NCBI RefSeq assembly: GCF_000150275.1
Contig: NW_002060965.1
Span: 682,001 to 746,000 of the forward strand
Direction: 5' to 3'
Length of the DNA: 64,000 bases
From: Trichoplax adhaerens
Taxonomy: Eukaryota > Animalia > Placozoa
Made by a program: the position numbers and the translations under genes. This document shows, in pieces, positions 1 through 9,263 of the stretch. Each line of letters begins with the position of its first letter. Positions within the stretch are counted from its first letter, which is position 1. The notes under the pieces were generated by a model, which was given only the letters and a program-made list of their open reading frames with translations, was not told the DNA's origin and did not search any database.

Positions 1-19
1 TTTTATTTGACCTTATTAG

Positions 20-3000
20 ATTCTTCGAATTGAGGCCTTGTGCAAAGATTTATACGAATCGACTGATGCCACGCAAAGAAGTCAAGCACAAGAAGCCTTG
101 GTAGCCATTTCCAATTCTGATAATTGCTTAACAGAATGCCAATTTCTGTTAGAACATAGTACAGTAAGTCATTCTATAAGGCATAAATTTATCATAATGG
201 ATTCATGATATGGATTGAATCGCCATCGATGGCCTATCAGTTTGGTTTTACTATTTTTATTAAAAAAAAAAACTATCAAGTTATTCTGCACAGTCTACTG
301 TACGTTGACTAGACCACTCGCACAGTCATCAAAACGTTCAGTTATAACTAGGACTGTAAATCCTATACACAGATAGCATTCCCTTTTTACGAGCGAGAAA
401 TAACACCTAGTTCAACATTGCAAAGACATGGTAAAGAAAATGATGGCGTCGAAATGATGCTATAGTGGAAAAGAAAACGCCATGAAGATAATAATGAACA
501 GGCGTCAAGTAGGGTCGATTCTTGCAGTAATACTGGTATCATGCTATATGATGACGACGTAATCGCGTTTGAATAGCCCTAGAATCGCTCTTTTCCTCCC
601 TCCATCGACGAGCAGATGTTTTCGATCTTACCATTAAAATCATCATTTTACTCCATTTGACCATGGAAAATAACAAAATGGATCATCCTTATCTATCGTA
701 GGATGATATTAATGATAATATCAACGCATTCCATGACCAAATCGAGCGTCCATTTTTACTTCATTTTATGATGGTTGTTATTTGCATGCTGCGACGAGAA
801 TCAATATTGATGACGCTGATGTAATCAACTGTTGTTTAGCGTCGACTGATTGGCATCAAATAATTAATCGATGGTGATGACTATTTTCAATTAATGGAGT
901 TTATTTTTTTCTCTCTCTCTTCATTAGTCTCCCTATGCACAAATGTTTGCCTCGCAATCATTAATCAAGCTAATCTCACGAACGACATCATCGTTACCCT
1001 TAAATCATCGATTAGAAATGCGTAAGGATAAACAACATAGATTCAATGGATATATCAACATTACAATTCCTTTCTTATCCTATCTGCAGATGCTTTAAAT
1101 ACGTGTTGTTATTATTTTTGACTATTCTAGGTAATTACTTACTGAACTATCTGGCTACACGACTCAAATTGACCAATTTTGTAGCCCAAGCTTTAATGAA
1201 GGTATGATATTAGAATCACCTCTCTTACAATGAACAATGTTTATCATCAACGATAAAAATGAAATAACCCTGATAATACTATTTTGAAGCAGTATGTAAT
1301 TTGTTTTTTTATCATCAACATCATCTAGTTATTAGCAAGAATTACCAAGTATAGTTGGTTTGAAATGCAAAAAGAACAATATGTCTTTCAAACTGTTGTA
1401 AATGATGTGATGAATAAATTCTTGCAAGGAAATTCTATCGATACGTGCGTTATTGGCATTCAGATTTTAACTAATTTAATTATAGAAATGAATCAGGTAA
1501 GAGTGGACTAGTTGCAACTTCACACGTTTATAATTATGTAGACCATAACGTCTACCATTGCCTTGAATTGGTTTTTTATAGGTTGCTGATCCATCCAGAT
1601 CGTTTGCCAAACAACGAAAGGTAACATACATAACCAAAAACAATTTAAGTATTTTTTATGTCAAACAAGCCCCATTTTAAATCAGTACAAAAATGCATAT
1701 TATCTTATCGAAAACATTTAGGTTGCAGCGTCCTTTCGTGATTCAGTACTATTAGATATGTTTAATGTCGCATGCTCATTCCTCAAACAGGTAACTTAAT
1801 AATATTATATGAATTGAAAATATTATTATCAATAATATAAAATACTCTTTATGGGTAAACAACCTTGCACTAAACTAATATTTTTTGCGTTCATAACTTT
1901 ATCATATCCAATTTTAGTTAACAAAGAAACCAGTAGATCAAAATAACCAAGAACAAGTAAGTCTTATCATTTTTCGAGATAATAGTAATCAATTATGCTT
2001 GAATATGGACTTGATGTAAATTTACTGTGGTCATCACTTTTTAAAATCTCTAGGTGACCTTAGTTAGCAGTCTATTACAGCTTACTGTGCAAGTATTATC
2101 CTTCGATTTTATCGGTTCATGTATAGATGAAGCATCCGATGACGTTAGCACCGTGCAAATACCAACATCATGGAGACAAGGTAAATTCTAAGATGAATTA
2201 TTAACGTCCGTCAATAATTTCTTAATGTTAACAATAAGCATGCATCTAAAGTGATTGTTGTTCTCCTTTCTTAAACATTCTAAATTGCATTACTGTGTGC
2301 TCGTAAGAAGTATCACCATATTTCTTATAGTTTACTAACATAAAATAATAAATCTTGCTTTTTTTATAGCTTTCCTAGATGGTAGTCTACTGGATCTATT
2401 CTTCAACTTGTATGGAGTATTCAATTCATCACTAACTGCGTTGGTAAGTCTTCTCAAATAAGTTATGTATGTGATTAAAATCTGGATAAAAATCTCCAAT
2501 AGTAGATGCTCTTGTAAATATTATTGTAGCAAAATTCTTGATTGAGCTAAAATTAGTAAGCTACATTGCTTAAAATTCAATATCACTAAGAGCGGTTGTT
2601 TACTAATAGTCACTATCATGCTTGGTCCATCTGGCTTCAGTGAGACGATCTTTATTTAATAACAATGAGCGACCTATTTACCTTAATTCACTTGTACAAG
2701 GAATTAGAAGCGTATTAGAAAAACCTCAGGTGAATATGAAGTCTATTTTGACAACATGGTACTACCAATTATAGCAAAATTGCCTAATGCCTAAGTTTTC
2801 ATTACTCTAAATCTCTTACTGATAGTATCTTTCGGATCCAAGTTGTTATCACGAATTTTGCCGCCTATTGGCTCGATTAAAATCGAATTATCAACTCGGC
2901 GAATTAGTTAAAGTTGACAATTATAGCCTAGTTATTGATCTAATAGCCAAGTTTACGGTCACAAGTGTACAGGTCAGATATTGCACTATTAAAGAGCAAT

Positions 3001-6000
3001 TATAAGATTGAAGTTTTTCCTTAGTAGCTTATCAGAATTTTTCATTCTGAGCCACTGATGTAACTACCCGTTTCTTATACTTACATGGACTTGACAACAT
3101 TATTAGGAGGTTTGGCAATGCGCACCAAATAGTGTCCACTATTTGTTAGGATTATGGCAACGTTTTGTTGCTTCCTTACCCTACGTCAAATCGTCATCCC
3201 CACATCATCTTAATGAATATAGCCCTCAGGTAAAAGATCCTGTTGTACTGTAATTCTCAATAGTAATTCGAATTTTACAACCTAATCTAGAGGGTATTTT
3301 ATTCCATGTAGATTACCAAAGCTTACGTTACATCACGGCTAGAGTCTGTACAACTCGTCATTAGGTAAATTACTGTTATTGCTCATTGGATACTATCTTT
3401 ACCAGTAAATGTAAAACTGTAATTGTATATTTTAACAGAGATGGCTTAGAGGATCCTATGGAAGATTATCACGTATTAGAGCAGCAACTTGAACAGGTAA
3501 ATTAATTTAAAGTTATTACAATAGTTATATACGAGTATGCAAATTATACTCTTATAATTGTCATTTGATATTATATAGCTTTCGACTATCGCTCGTTGTG
3601 ATTACGACCAAACCTGCTCGTTAGTCATGTCTCTATTCGACCAGGCGGCATCATCCTATCAGGAATGTTTACAACAGCAATCTCAAAGAAGTGATGCAAG
3701 TTTCGTAGTTTACGAAGGTAATTAAGTCCAGGAATCTATTATTTTTAAAAATTTTCAGTGACTGTAGAATGGCTTTTTTAGGACAACTTGCTTGGTTGGT
3801 ATGTATCATTGGGTCTGTAGTAGCTGGCAGAACACTTTTCTATATCGCGGAGGAAAGCGATATTCTTGATGGAGAATTGATTTGCCGGTAGTTTATTAGT
3901 TTCATTCATGACCTATTGTAGTATTACGTGAATTATATAACGTTATACCTTTTGTTTTGTTTAATAGTGTGTTACAGCTAATGAAGTTGCTAGAGGAAAG
4001 AAATCCTCAAGTAAGATAAATTGTTTTTATGTAGGGCTATATCAACATCTTGTTCTTGATTTATTACATTACCTTACTAGGTTTTAAGCGAAAAATTAGA
4101 TCTCGCCATCTTGAGCTTCTTTGAACAATTTAGAAAGATTTACATTGGCGACCAAATGCAAAAAACCGCAAAGGTCTCTAAGACTCTTCGTATTGTACTA
4201 AAATTATTACTTAATTTTTTAGCATGATAGTCCGCTTAATTCACTTTGTATATCCAATATATGCTAAAAAAAGAATTACTTATGTCAAATTTATGCAGGT
4301 TTATAGCTGTATTGGCGAACGTCTGGGTCTTAAAGATGAATCAATGGTGTTAAGCATATTTATAAATAAAATGTAAGTATCCTTGCTTTTTTATAATCGT
4401 TATCTGATTTAGTATTGCTATTGAAGAAACGAGCAAGATCTATATATGATAAAAATCTTTTTCTTTTTAGCTTATCGAACCTAAAATATAAAAGTGAAAA
4501 TGAATTGATTATGTTGCATACGCTGCAGCTGTTAAGTGATCTCTCGATGGGATATCCTGCAATACATACTTGATTTTTCTCAGATATGTCAATAATCCAA
4601 CACTTGCTACTATTTTGCTTAACTGTTCTTAACTACAGCAGTGTTAGAAAAATTGTCAAATTAGAGTCAATTCAATTTGTTCTAAAGAATCATACAGTAA
4701 GTTATTAATACAATTTTGGAGATGGCAAGATAAATCATATCTAGCTCATATTCAAGCACATCACGAAACCAATTGTTGTATTTATAATCCCATCAGGAAC
4801 AACATTTTCCGTTTCTTGGAATTCAGCCAAATATTACACTTAAAAATATGAGACATAGAACCTTATTTTACACTGCTATTGGTCGTTTCTTGATGGTAGA
4901 TCTAGGAGAGGACGATGAATCGTTTGTACAATTCTTCATGCCTCTTACATGTAAGTACTGTTAATTGCTAAGGTAATTGTGATGAATTTCTTCAATTTTC
5001 TTCGACAGCATAACATCTACAAATTGAATGTCCTCTTCTTAGTAAAATTTGAACAATTCAAGAATCAAATAGCATCAACATCAGTTAATGAAGAGCAAGT
5101 CAAGGTTTTATAACTCTTATTAAATGCTATGTTGAATGCATATCACGTACTAAATGAATATATGCTCTTAATAGAGAACCATAATCGGTCTATGCCGTGA
5201 CATAAGAGGCCTTGGTACAGCTTTTGTCAACAGATCATGTTACATGATGCTGTTCGATTGGTTGTATCTTTTCCATGTCCCTCAGACTACCAAATCAATA
5301 ATAACCCAATTGTCATGCAATCTAATTACAGCGCATATTCGATATGTTCCTTAACTTGTTTAACAGATATCCCGCATATATGCCTGCTTTAATTCGAGCA
5401 GTGGAGTTATGGTATCATGATCCTAGTCTTACAACCCCGGTATTAAAGTTAGTGACTGAAATAGTCCAAAATCGATCTCAAAGATTACAATTTGAAGTAT
5501 CTTCTCCAAATGGTGTCCTATTATTCCGGGAAGTTAGCAAAATAATTTGTACTTATGGTAAGTTTGCTACTTTGCTAATACTCTTAATTCTTTCAACCAT
5601 TTTAATTCTATTGTTTGACGTTAGGTTCCAGAGTATTGTTACTTAATGATATACCGGAAAGACAAATATACGCAATGAAATATCCTTCCTTTCACAATAA
5701 TAAAATCATCATTTTACACTAAAACATTTTCATTAGATGAAGTTATGTATTATGATCATTGCATTGAAATATTGTATAACAAGTTACAAATAAATTATAT
5801 GTTCCTTGACGATGTATAAGCTTAAAGGCATTTCTATTTGCTTCAGCATGTTAAAAGCAGCTTTGAGCGGGAACTATGTTAATTTTGGTATATTTAGACT
5901 TTATGGCGATGATGCATTTGACAATGTATTAGGAATGTTCCTTAGGATGTTATTATCTATACCTTCTCAGGACTTACTGGTATGATATGAAATAGCCAAT

Positions 6001-7279
6001 GATTTATGCATTACTGTATATTGAGAATTATGATTCTGATGCTGTTGCAAACTCACATTAAGGACTATCCTAAATTGGGGAAAGCCTATTATTCACTTAT
6101 TGAAGCACTAGCACAAGATCATGCGTCTTATATCAATAATCTGGAGCCCAATGTAAGTCATAGTCTCAAATTTGAAATTGATAATTGTATAAATAATTAT
6201 TTATTGTCAAAAATCCCATCCCAAAAATGCGATATTACTATTGTATTGTCATAGTGTTAAGTGATTGTCCTAATTGTCCATAATTAAAATTTTAATTCTC
6301 CATAGGTCTTACTCGTAATTTTATCTACCCTTTCGCAAGGATTTGTTGCACTTGGTACGCAATTACTATAACCAGTTTTTACGTAACATATCAGTCTTTG
6401 AATCATTTTTGCTAAGCTAACAGATCTTTTCGTTTATATAGATGTCAACATTTGTACCTTCTGCTGCTCTGCATTAGACCACTTATTAACTAATTTGTTT
6501 AAAGAAATCTCTAAAACTAAAAAATCAAATAATACATCTCAGGAGCAAAGTTCTTTACTTCGTGTATTAGAGCATAAATCAGAAGTACTTCAGCAGGTAT
6601 ACTATTTAGCAAAGTATTCAATTCGATTATGACTTACCCCAACTGATACAGAAAATTTATGTTAATATCCCTTTAGGTATTAGACACTATCTTAAATATA
6701 ATTATGTTTGAAGATTGTAAAAATCAGGTAGGATTGCAATCAATATTCGTATAATTAATTAAAAAAGATCTTATTTTTTGTCTCGACTACCGGTAATAAA
6801 CTACGCATGATGTTAATGGCTAACACTTTTCTTTTAATAGTGGACTATGTCGAGACCTCTGTTAGGATTAATTTTGTTGAATGAAAAGGTAACGATGAGA
6901 AAAATAATTAGCTGATTCAATTGTCAAGATATTTTAATTCGTCATCACTTTATCTTGTAGTACTTTTCCGAACTTACTGCCAACATCATTTCAAGTCAAC
7001 ATGTTAATAAGCAGGAAAAAATGTCTTCATGTTTTTCGAGTCTTATGGATGGAGTGGAATTTTCTTTATTTACAAAAAATAGAGAAAGGTAACTGTGCCA
7101 TTGATTTATCTTGTATTAATAACAATCAAACTAGAATAGTCTGGATTTAATTTCTAACTTCATGTGATAGATTTGCACAGAATTTATCCGCATTTCGTCG
7201 AGATGTCCATACATTACTTGGTGCGTCTATTTCGCTTCAGCCTGATAATTCTACCACTGCTAATATGATGACTTCTTAA
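20..7279 (+). CDS. XPO7: Exportin-7 / RanBP16-17 family importin-beta-like transport receptor, multi-exon; start codon lies upstream of the window
   Basis: Spliced exons give [16 protein letters not shown]..., [124 protein letters not shown], all matching XPO7. First visible exon 20-163 (AG...GT); stop TAA 7277-7279. Confidence 0.96.
4552..4632 (+). other. U12-type (minor) intron with AT-AA termini in XPO7
   Basis: 5' ATATCCTG; branch TTTTGCTTAAC (4613-4623). Ending at AA 4632 restores [14 protein letters not shown], matching conserved GYSSVRK. Confidence 0.8.
5264..5366 (+). other. U12-type GT-AG intron in XPO7
   Basis: 5' GTATCTTTT; branch TTCCTTAAC (5347-5355) with A 12 nt before the 3' end; joins FDWL-YPAYMP in frame. 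Confidence 0.9.
5680..5819 (+). other. U12-type intron with AT-AA termini in XPO7
   Basis: 5' ATATCCTT; branch TTCCTTGAC (5802-5810). Ending at AA 5819 restores [13 protein letters not shown]. Confidence 0.85.
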
Positions 7280-9263
7280 TGTGGAAGATATTAGTGTCGA
7301 CATTCTCAACGAATAACTTTAAGAGATTACTACTATCGGCAGTTTAGTAGTATTGCTTGATGTTTATGATTATTGAAACTATAAAAAGTTTTATTGATGA
7401 CTATGTATTAAATTTTTTGTATAAGATGAGGAACTCTCATTGATGCTCTAATTCTAAATTCATGAATTACTTTTGTTGAAAATGCACCTCAAAGCTGGAA
7501 TAGGTAACACTTTACATGCAAGTTGTTCGTTCTAAGTTTTCTGTTAGATAGGAATAGGTATTACCGTATTTCACATCAAAACATGGTAAATATTGAGTTG
7601 AACAGTTGCATAATGCGTACCTTATATTAATATTTGTTGAAGCATTTTTGATGCTATTTTCATATCTGTTTGCATATGTATGTTTCCTACCGATTAACCC
7701 GATGATGATATTACGAGTAAACAACCAGTTTGATAATTTATAGTTGATAAAATTTTGTACGACATTAGTCCGATTAAAAAATTTTGATAAATTCCTATTC
7801 CAGCTTCGATACTCTTTATCATTACCTGCTTTATGTACAAATAGTACTACATTCTATTCTGCCGTATTATCTCATTGTATATAACCTTTGATGTTTATCG
7901 AAATGTTACTTAGAGAATTTAATCCTGGTATTAAAGTATTTGGTGAGCTAACGTAGTCTACTCCTTTGATGCATGATGACTTTTCAGTTGTTGAAATTAC
8001 ATTTTATGAGCCTAAAATTAAAGTTACTCGTACGTATTTTAAAACATTCAGACTGTACTATTTACGTTCATGTTTTGGTGTAATACGAACTATTTTGCCT
8101 ACCATCGTAATTGATTATCTGAAACATTAATAATAATTATAATAACAATAACAATACCAGACAAGTTAAATGCAATATTGATGGATGTAAGATAGAATGT
8201 GTGCGGCTTGTTGTGAGTACATTGCATGTAATTTACAAAATTTTTATTGTTAATATCAAAATAAAGTATTAGATGATCGGTATTTTCAAGGATTGTTATT
8301 AGTAGGAAAGGCGACAGATTCGGGCTGGTTAGTAATGGCCAGCAGGAATTTAATAATTATTTTGCAATGCTGTGTAATACTCTACTCTACTGAGAGTTTA
8401 TCAATGCTCTAAAGTTATTTTCATTGGATACTTTTAGTGAGAGATGAGTATTTTTTCGAGTATTCTTATTGTACAACTAGTTTTAGTTTTCGTCTCTCGA
8501 GTCAATTGCAGTCACTTCACGACTACATCATTGGTTTTGGGATTTGACTAACCCTATAAGTATCATATATATTTTACAGTCCATTCTATATGGCGTTAAC
8601 TTATAGCAAGTAGAAAAGGTCGCAAAGACTGTATTTACCTTATTTTACTAGTTCAATATTATATCACTGTCCATTATTAGTATGCACGTCATAGTGTAAT
8701 GTACAGTGAGTGCTACTCATTTCGAGTGGGATTATACAGCGAAAAATATTGGTCTCTTACGGTAATCAAGCAATAAGAAGTAACAAAATAGAGCTTTGGT
8801 AGAAGAGGAATGTATCCAAAGAATACAATAAGATAGCAAGCGAGAGAAGAATCTGCTGAGCCATGGACAAAAATCCGGGGTTGGACTTGTAGTAGTCCAT
8901 GTTCAATAATTCGTCATTTGTTATAGAGACGGGTGGACGGACAACCCGTGATATATCATGAAGTGGCCGTTGCTATATTGCTAAAGCGTCTAAGGGGTCA
9001 TACTAGATATTAGCAGGTGTTTAAGTGCCGTAATAGGCTAATATTGGTAGAACATAAGAACATCTATAGTATACTATAGTTTAGTAAATTACCTGCGCAG
9101 AGCAGAATATCATTGTCGCGGCCAAATCAAGGGAATCGCTTAGCGACTGCTAGCTGTTCATCATTTATCACGACAATTAGCACTTTCAGCAGTAGCTTTC
9201 AATCTAAGAAGTGTTTACAAGGTGAAGGAAATCTAATTAGGAACAATCTCAAGAAAAAGAATC

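Follow-up and report, generated by a model that had tools for sequence, protein, structure and literature searches.

The question raised by this locus is whether two introns of a single gene can both end in AA, each one base short of a canonical dinucleotide whose use would shift the reading frame. The gene is the exportin-7 (XPO7/RanBP16) orthologue of Trichoplax adhaerens, which occupies positions 1 to 7278 on the plus strand of the 64,000-nucleotide stretch analysed here (contig NW_002060965.1, positions 682,001 to 746,000; hereafter the window). The introns, on the same strand, are intron 1 (4552 to 4632, 81 nt) and intron 2 (5680 to 5819, 140 nt). The initial annotation, made from the letters alone, had described both as minor-spliceosome (U12-dependent) introns with AT-AA ends. 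We conclude that both are very likely genuine minor-spliceosome introns of placozoan exportin-7, excised precisely at AT...AA. With moderate confidence, we further favour the reading that the minor spliceosome of this lineage, or its 3'-site factors, has changed the way in which it reads the end of an intron.

The junctions are documented by RNA. Contigs from four public runs, belonging to four studies, were aligned to window positions 3000 to 7400, and two of the runs contained spliced RNA: X6 from study P3, whose library is declared as RNA-Seq, and X9 from study P5. In the contigs of both, position 4551 is connected with 4633; the 81 bases left out have AT..AA ends, and the joint contains zero ambiguous letters. 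The second joint, also present in both, leads from 5677 to 5818 and skips 140 bases; it has two ambiguous letters and is equivalent to 5679 to 5820. This ambiguity permits only AA..AT, AA..TA or AT..AA as intron ends, and AT..AA is chosen among the three equivalents because of the 5' site motif. All of the remaining 13 joints listed in this region are GT..AG. The exon preceding intron 1 (4471 to 4551, delimited by the joints 4372 to 4471 and 4551 to 4633) ends with ...LSM and the letters GG in phase 2; its beginning at 4471 corrects the extent given in the initial annotation. The first base of the following exon (4633 to 4696), a C, finishes the glycine codon and is followed by YSSVRK. Likewise, RNA joints define the exon before intron 2 (5625 to 5679), which ends with ...IYAM and AA in phase 2, and the one after it (5820 to 5979), where an initial G finishes the lysine codon ahead of LKGISICF. 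At the junctions the mRNA thus reads GGC-TAC and AAG-CTT (...ATGAA|GCTT), which are the codons predicted for AT-AA splicing; GGA and AAA were not seen. The restored exportin-7 frame was further supported at intron 1 by the Pfam profile TPR_XPO7, which matches the two short flanking exons at profile positions 181–205 and 207–227 (E 7e-4 and 6e-5, under the curated cut-off), so that one position remains for the junction glycine.

These joints exclude the AC (4632–4633) and the AG (5819–5820) one base further on as the splice sites, as the initial annotation had argued, and equally the in-frame AG at 4638, which the RNA contigs do not use. They also bear on a reading in which both splice sites are shifted by one base, giving TA...AC and TA...AG. 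Such a shift would provide a canonical last dinucleotide and exactly the same protein, with glycine from GGC or GGA and lysine from AAG or AAA. Because the encoded amino acids are identical, protein conservation cannot separate it from the AT-AA reading. The RNA contigs can: TA-AG splicing would give ATGAAA|CTT in place of the observed AAG-CTT, the GGC-TAC joint of intron 1 has no ambiguity at all, and the ambiguity at intron 2 does not extend to TA..AG. We therefore leave the shifted reading practically no chance. A further possibility, that ordinary AT-AC or AT-AG introns are concealed by an indel in the assembly, has prior plausibility in its favour and nothing more. The contigs of run X1 are contiguous through all introns and differ from the window by scattered single-nucleotide polymorphisms (SNPs), and were thus taken as DNA-like and as representing another haplotype. 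They show no insertion or deletion at 4552–4633 or 5812–5841, and the mRNA contigs agree with the window on either side of each joint; an assembly error at these sites appears to us next to inconceivable. Across 5724–5841, a second haplotype of intron 2 was found in X1 and X4, with SNPs at 5754, 5771, 5785 and 5811. The last of these (G>T) falls past the branch motif and before the 3' end, and leaves both the spacing and the AA end intact.

Both introns carry the marks of the minor spliceosome, in agreement with the initial annotation. Intron 1 starts with ATATCCTG at 4552–4559 and intron 2 with ATATCCTT at 5680–5687, in each case exactly at the RNA-defined junction. The branch motif of intron 1 is of the GCTTAAC type (TTGCTTAAC at 4613–4623, branch A at 4622) with one mismatch, and that of intron 2 is a perfect TTCCTTGAC at 5802–5810 (branch A at 5809). 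Their 3' ends read ...TTAA|C and ...ATAA|G, and recounting on the sequence placed each of them 10 nt past the branch A. Both 5' sites (/RTATCCTT) and both branch motifs (TCCTTRAY) agree with the consensus of U12 introns, and neither intron has a pyrimidine tract. A branch-to-end spacing of 10–13 nt is usual for U12 introns and one of 11–13 nt is optimal (PMC3584512); the 10 nt found here represent the short end of this optimum. Removal of the two introns by the major (U2) spliceosome in spite of their AT-AA ends is conceivable in principle, since U2-type AT-AC introns exist (PMC1557818). We nevertheless regard it as very improbable: the 5' sites read ATATCCT and are not of the U2-like ATAAGT type, the branch motifs lie 10 nt from the 3' end without a pyrimidine tract, and the orthologous introns elsewhere are of the U12 type.

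The genome encodes the corresponding machinery. Among the small nuclear RNAs (snRNAs) that the initial annotation had proposed to inspect, U11 (99 bits), U12 (97 bits) and U6atac (105 bits) were found above their Rfam cut-offs, as was U4atac (59 bits), and the U12 gene contains the canonical branch-pairing box GAGTAAGGAAAA. A gene for CENATAC/CCDC84, a protein that helps A-type minor introns to be spliced in human cells (PMC8280824), is present as well. With a 31-aa query we found U2AF35 and no second U2AF35-like first zinc finger as a candidate for ZRSR2, a test too weak to establish absence. One U6atac locus (G000:C1402:438491-439592, L059-L061) consists of a full-length gene followed by five tandem 3'-partial U6atac-like copies within about 1.1 kb.

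Intron positions in other animals provided the weightiest evidence that these are minor introns, and indicated which terminus is the older one. Two U12 introns are listed for human XPO7 (supplementary tables of PMC8280824). The first, an AT-AC intron at chr8:21989084-21990343, interrupts the same codon in the same phase as intron 1 of the window (LS[IM]G | YSS), with the flanks ..TCC ATT GG | ATATCC ... CAC | G TAC AG. It belongs to the A-type and is CENATAC-dependent, and the CENATAC gene is likewise found in the placozoan genome. Its AC end lies about 20 nt past the branch motif, whereas the placozoan intron ends with AA at 10 nt. The second human intron, of the GT-AG type (chr8:21994452-21995491; flanks ..TGG AT | GTATCC ... 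CAG | A TAT CC), has the same position (..W + 2 nt | YP) as a third intron of the placozoan gene, at 5264 to 5366 on the plus strand (RNA joint 5263 to 5367). That intron starts with GTATCT and contains a perfect TTCCTTAAC at 5347–5355, 12 nt from its 3' end, and its position (..DW + 2 nt | YP) is also occupied in four metagenome contigs of other animals (L134, L136, L151, L161). Given the match to the human U12 intron, the U12 motifs and the GT..AG ends in RNA, the gene holds three U12-type introns; the initial annotation was right about the two AT-AA introns and made no mention of the GT-AG intron between them.

Intron 2 has no counterpart in the human U12 list. Its position was therefore examined in metagenome contigs of other animals, which were scanned with the exon that follows the intron. 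One contig (L127, Ga0065711_1011333) was excluded from all comparisons as it carries a vertebrate-type XPO7 exon and possibly represents host or human DNA. In ten contigs (L137, L139, L141, L144, L148, L150, L151, L152, L156 and L161) an AT-AC U12 intron occupies the same position and phase. Those of the related L137-L156 group and of the more distant L161 start with ATATCCT and have the branch motif 14 nt before the AC. Two further contigs (L134, L136) carry a GT-AG intron of the U12 type, GTATCCTT...AG, at this site. The introns at this position share the layout ..Y-x-[LM] + AA | G/A + LKG.. with a branch 10–14 nt from the end; they differ from intron 2 in being longer (123–1,600 nt) and in ending with AC or AG instead of AA. 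The intron has been lost at the intron 2 position in L126, L128-L133, L135, L155, L160, L162 and L163, and L131, L136 and L160 read through the position of intron 1. In another contig, L159 (VSKX01087595.1), the intron 2 position shows a U12 branch motif and, after it, ...TTTTTAA with G as the next base; this may be a second AT-AA intron or an AG shifted by one base, the 5' end lying outside the 1.1 kb covered. Both positions thus hold U12 introns of ancient origin whose ends in other animals are AC or AG, and the AA ends of introns 1 and 2 were most likely derived in this lineage. A conversion of AT-AC to AT-AA, as envisaged in the initial annotation, is thus supported by the human AT-AC intron at the first position and the AT-AC and GT-AG introns of the contigs at the second, together with the following census.

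Throughout animals and plants AT-AA is the commonest non-canonical subtype of minor introns, yet it is rare (PMC1557818, PMC8280824, PMC10639083). Human has three AT-AA U12 introns (PMC1557818), and among conserved animal minor introns 823 AT-AA stand against 16,044 AT-AC, a ratio of about 1:20 (1.1% and 21.8% of the total, respectively; PMC10639083, Table S1). We searched the whole Trichoplax genome (105.6 Mb in 1,414 contigs) for ATATCCTT followed by TCCTTRAC within 400 nt, ignoring the 3' end. This pattern gave 91 matches, compared with 76 for a reversed control, so that about half or more of the raw matches are due to chance. Candidates were kept if reading frames were open on both sides and the sequence could not be read straight through. 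A further pattern, in which the eighth base of the 5' site is not T, showed no excess over its control (27 vs 22), and strict-pattern matches spanning more than 200 nt were at background level. Neither set was counted, apart from single well-supported genes.

About a dozen introns remained, in which AA and AC ends were about equally represented. AA ends were assigned to intron 2 of XPO7 by RNA, to a serine hydroxymethyltransferase (SHMT) gene (L051; 10 nt from the branch A) by Pfam profile positions 226–255 continuing at 258–300, and to a Ras-like GTPase gene on the minus strand (L030, G000:C1410:8258335-8259051) by profile positions 32–59 continuing at 60–99. Two more, L043 and L020, each 11 nt from the branch A, were placed by reading frame only. 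AC ends were assigned in ARS2/SRRT (L103) and a Wntless-like gene (L097), where Pfam identified the host gene and the frame gave the end, and by reading frame only in L013, L048 and L005; the introns of L029 and L001 may end in AT. Beyond SHMT, the Ras-like gene, ARS2 and the Wntless-like gene, Pfam was uninformative for the exon pieces of the census. Two exon pieces had no match among solved structures, and a search of a large protein collection with one piece also yielded none, as expected from its length window. Among the rejected candidates were three paralogous short-span matches (L055-L057) lacking reading frames on that strand, and L042, an exon on the minus strand (G000:C1412:592555-593212) that encodes a myosin P-loop (GESGAGKTE..) and in which ATATCCTTAAC and TCCTTAAC occur in frame and mimic a U12 intron. 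The census is suggestive of AT-AA being about as frequent as AT-AC among the A-type minor introns of Trichoplax. It goes no further because the sample is small, half of its ends were set by frame alone, and AT-rich DNA favours an in-frame AA. The description of AT-AA as a rare variant in the initial annotation holds in general, with the additions that it is the commonest non-canonical U12 subtype and that it is apparently common in this genome.

The same introns bear on how the 3' end is chosen. The initial annotation had raised the possibility of a distance ruler, taken here as a fixed 10 nt from the branch A regardless of the dinucleotide. The two XPO7 introns and the SHMT intron all end at 10 nt, and L043 and L020 at 11 nt. 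In intron 1 the AA at 10 nt is used and the AC at 11 nt is not. The intron of the Ras-like gene, however, ends with AA at 20 nt from its only branch motif, having passed over an in-frame AT at 17 nt. The AT-AC candidates end at 10–13 nt, and L005 apparently takes the in-frame AC at 13 nt rather than the AA at 12 nt. A rule that takes the first A-N lying at least 10 nt past the branch was tried and discarded, as it fitted 11 of 23 candidates only. Most of the U12 ends examined fall at 10–13 nt from the branch A, which is the usual spacing of U12 introns (PMC3584512). In view of the Ras-like intron, of L005 and of the usual U12 spacing, a fixed ruler is therefore not supported, and we consider it quite unlikely. 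Our preferred account, in which the U12 distance window is the ordinary one and the last nucleotide is relaxed, explains the 3' ends; in all six AT-AA introns examined the final letters are TAA, and TAC closes four of the five AC candidates. The Ras-like intron directly follows a ..WDMTGNE motif and has an out-of-frame AG one base past its AA end.

Such neighbouring dinucleotides could also be functional. If the AC or AG one base downstream were used as well, frameshifted transcripts would result, and their removal by nonsense-mediated decay (NMD) could make a regulated switch of exportin-7. U12 3' site selection is error-prone (PMC3584512), the AA of the six introns examined is followed by G in three cases and by C in one, and NMD targets would be hidden in steady-state contigs. 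On the other side, no +1 joint occurs among the joints listed, and an AA|G or AA|A layout recurs in unrelated genes, in better agreement with base composition than with a switch dedicated to XPO7. A switch of this kind thus seems unlikely to us.

The reading that we favour can be formulated as follows. U11 and U12 would bind to these introns at their 5' site and branch motif, and the 3' cut would fall on an A-N dinucleotide inside the short, U12-typical window past the branch A, here at 10 nt. As the final base of the intron, A would in this lineage be roughly equivalent to the customary C. Replacement of the ancestral C at the end by A could then have left function intact, a change plausibly driven by the strong A+T mutational bias of a genome with 32% G+C. 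The AC and AG one base downstream would be out-of-frame neighbours rather than sites in use, and both XPO7 introns would be cases of a genome-wide AT-AA habit. Several points weigh against this proposal. Intron 1 has an imperfect branch motif, with a G where the first C is expected, and RNA contigs are unable to reveal minor isoforms. The dependence of both introns on U12 is deduced from motifs and orthology. The census comprises about a dozen introns drawn from raw matches of which about half or more are chance, most 3' ends other than those of XPO7, SHMT and the Ras-like gene were set by the reading frame alone, and in A+T-rich DNA an in-frame AA is likelier to arise by chance than an AC.

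The gene itself was delineated from frame translations, the Pfam profile TPR_XPO7, relatives and the spliced RNA contigs. Its first codons lie beyond the left edge of the window (32% G+C), the stop codon is near 7276, and the frame translations show the coding sequence to be split over many short exons on the plus strand. The exons were searched singly, never as a joined spliced model; one of 63 aa shares 51–78% identity with proteins of about 1,035–1,096 aa that contain the GYSSVRK and LKGI motifs. By family profile and full-length relatives, the predicted product is an exportin-7. A public protein, P0002 (818 aa), matches the gene at 100%, and its gene model is wrong at both AT-AA introns. 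It proceeds from ..FINK to ISVRK, using the AG at 4638, so that the exon 4471–4551 (27 codons) and two residues are absent. Further on, it runs into intron 2 and terminates there, whereby the exon 5820–5979 is missing and about the last quarter of the protein is lost. The segments concerned are 4471–4638 and 5680–5740. Gene models are probably disrupted likewise at every other AT-AA intron of this genome. At 4373–4384, a U2-type GTAAGT overlaps a U12-like GTATCCTT located four bases further in. The RNA uses the U2 site at 4373 (joint 4372 to 4471), and the 3' end of this intron shows a T-tract and lacks a U12 branch motif; the overlap may have been left over from a U12-to-U2 conversion or be due to chance.

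The XPO7 introns provide dated, position-matched cases of a subtype change in which a terminal C became A. Should AT-AA indeed equal AT-AC in frequency, Trichoplax would be a natural system for finding out what reads the last nucleotide of a minor intron, with the A-C or A-A terminal contact, ZRSR2 and CENATAC as candidate readers. Such a system would further reveal to what extent base composition may shape splice-site rules. Our literature search found no paper on the termini of placozoan minor introns. AT-AA introns as a kind are already known, and those of human PIGB, MSH3 and RASGRP4 resemble the XPO7 introns in their termini and in having the U12 5' site and branch motif; novelty may lie in their frequency here and in the apparent tolerance of A on a par with C at the last position. 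Elsewhere AT-AA introns are rare, whereas here two occur in a single gene and there seem to be about as many of them as AT-AC introns genome-wide. A parallel is the minor-intron system of Physarum polycephalum, for which a lineage-wide shift in sequence rules is reported (bioRxiv 10.1101/2020.10.12.336362). There the shift reportedly involves a massive numerical expansion with altered features, whereas in Trichoplax the number of minor introns looks ordinary and only the last nucleotide seems to have been relaxed.

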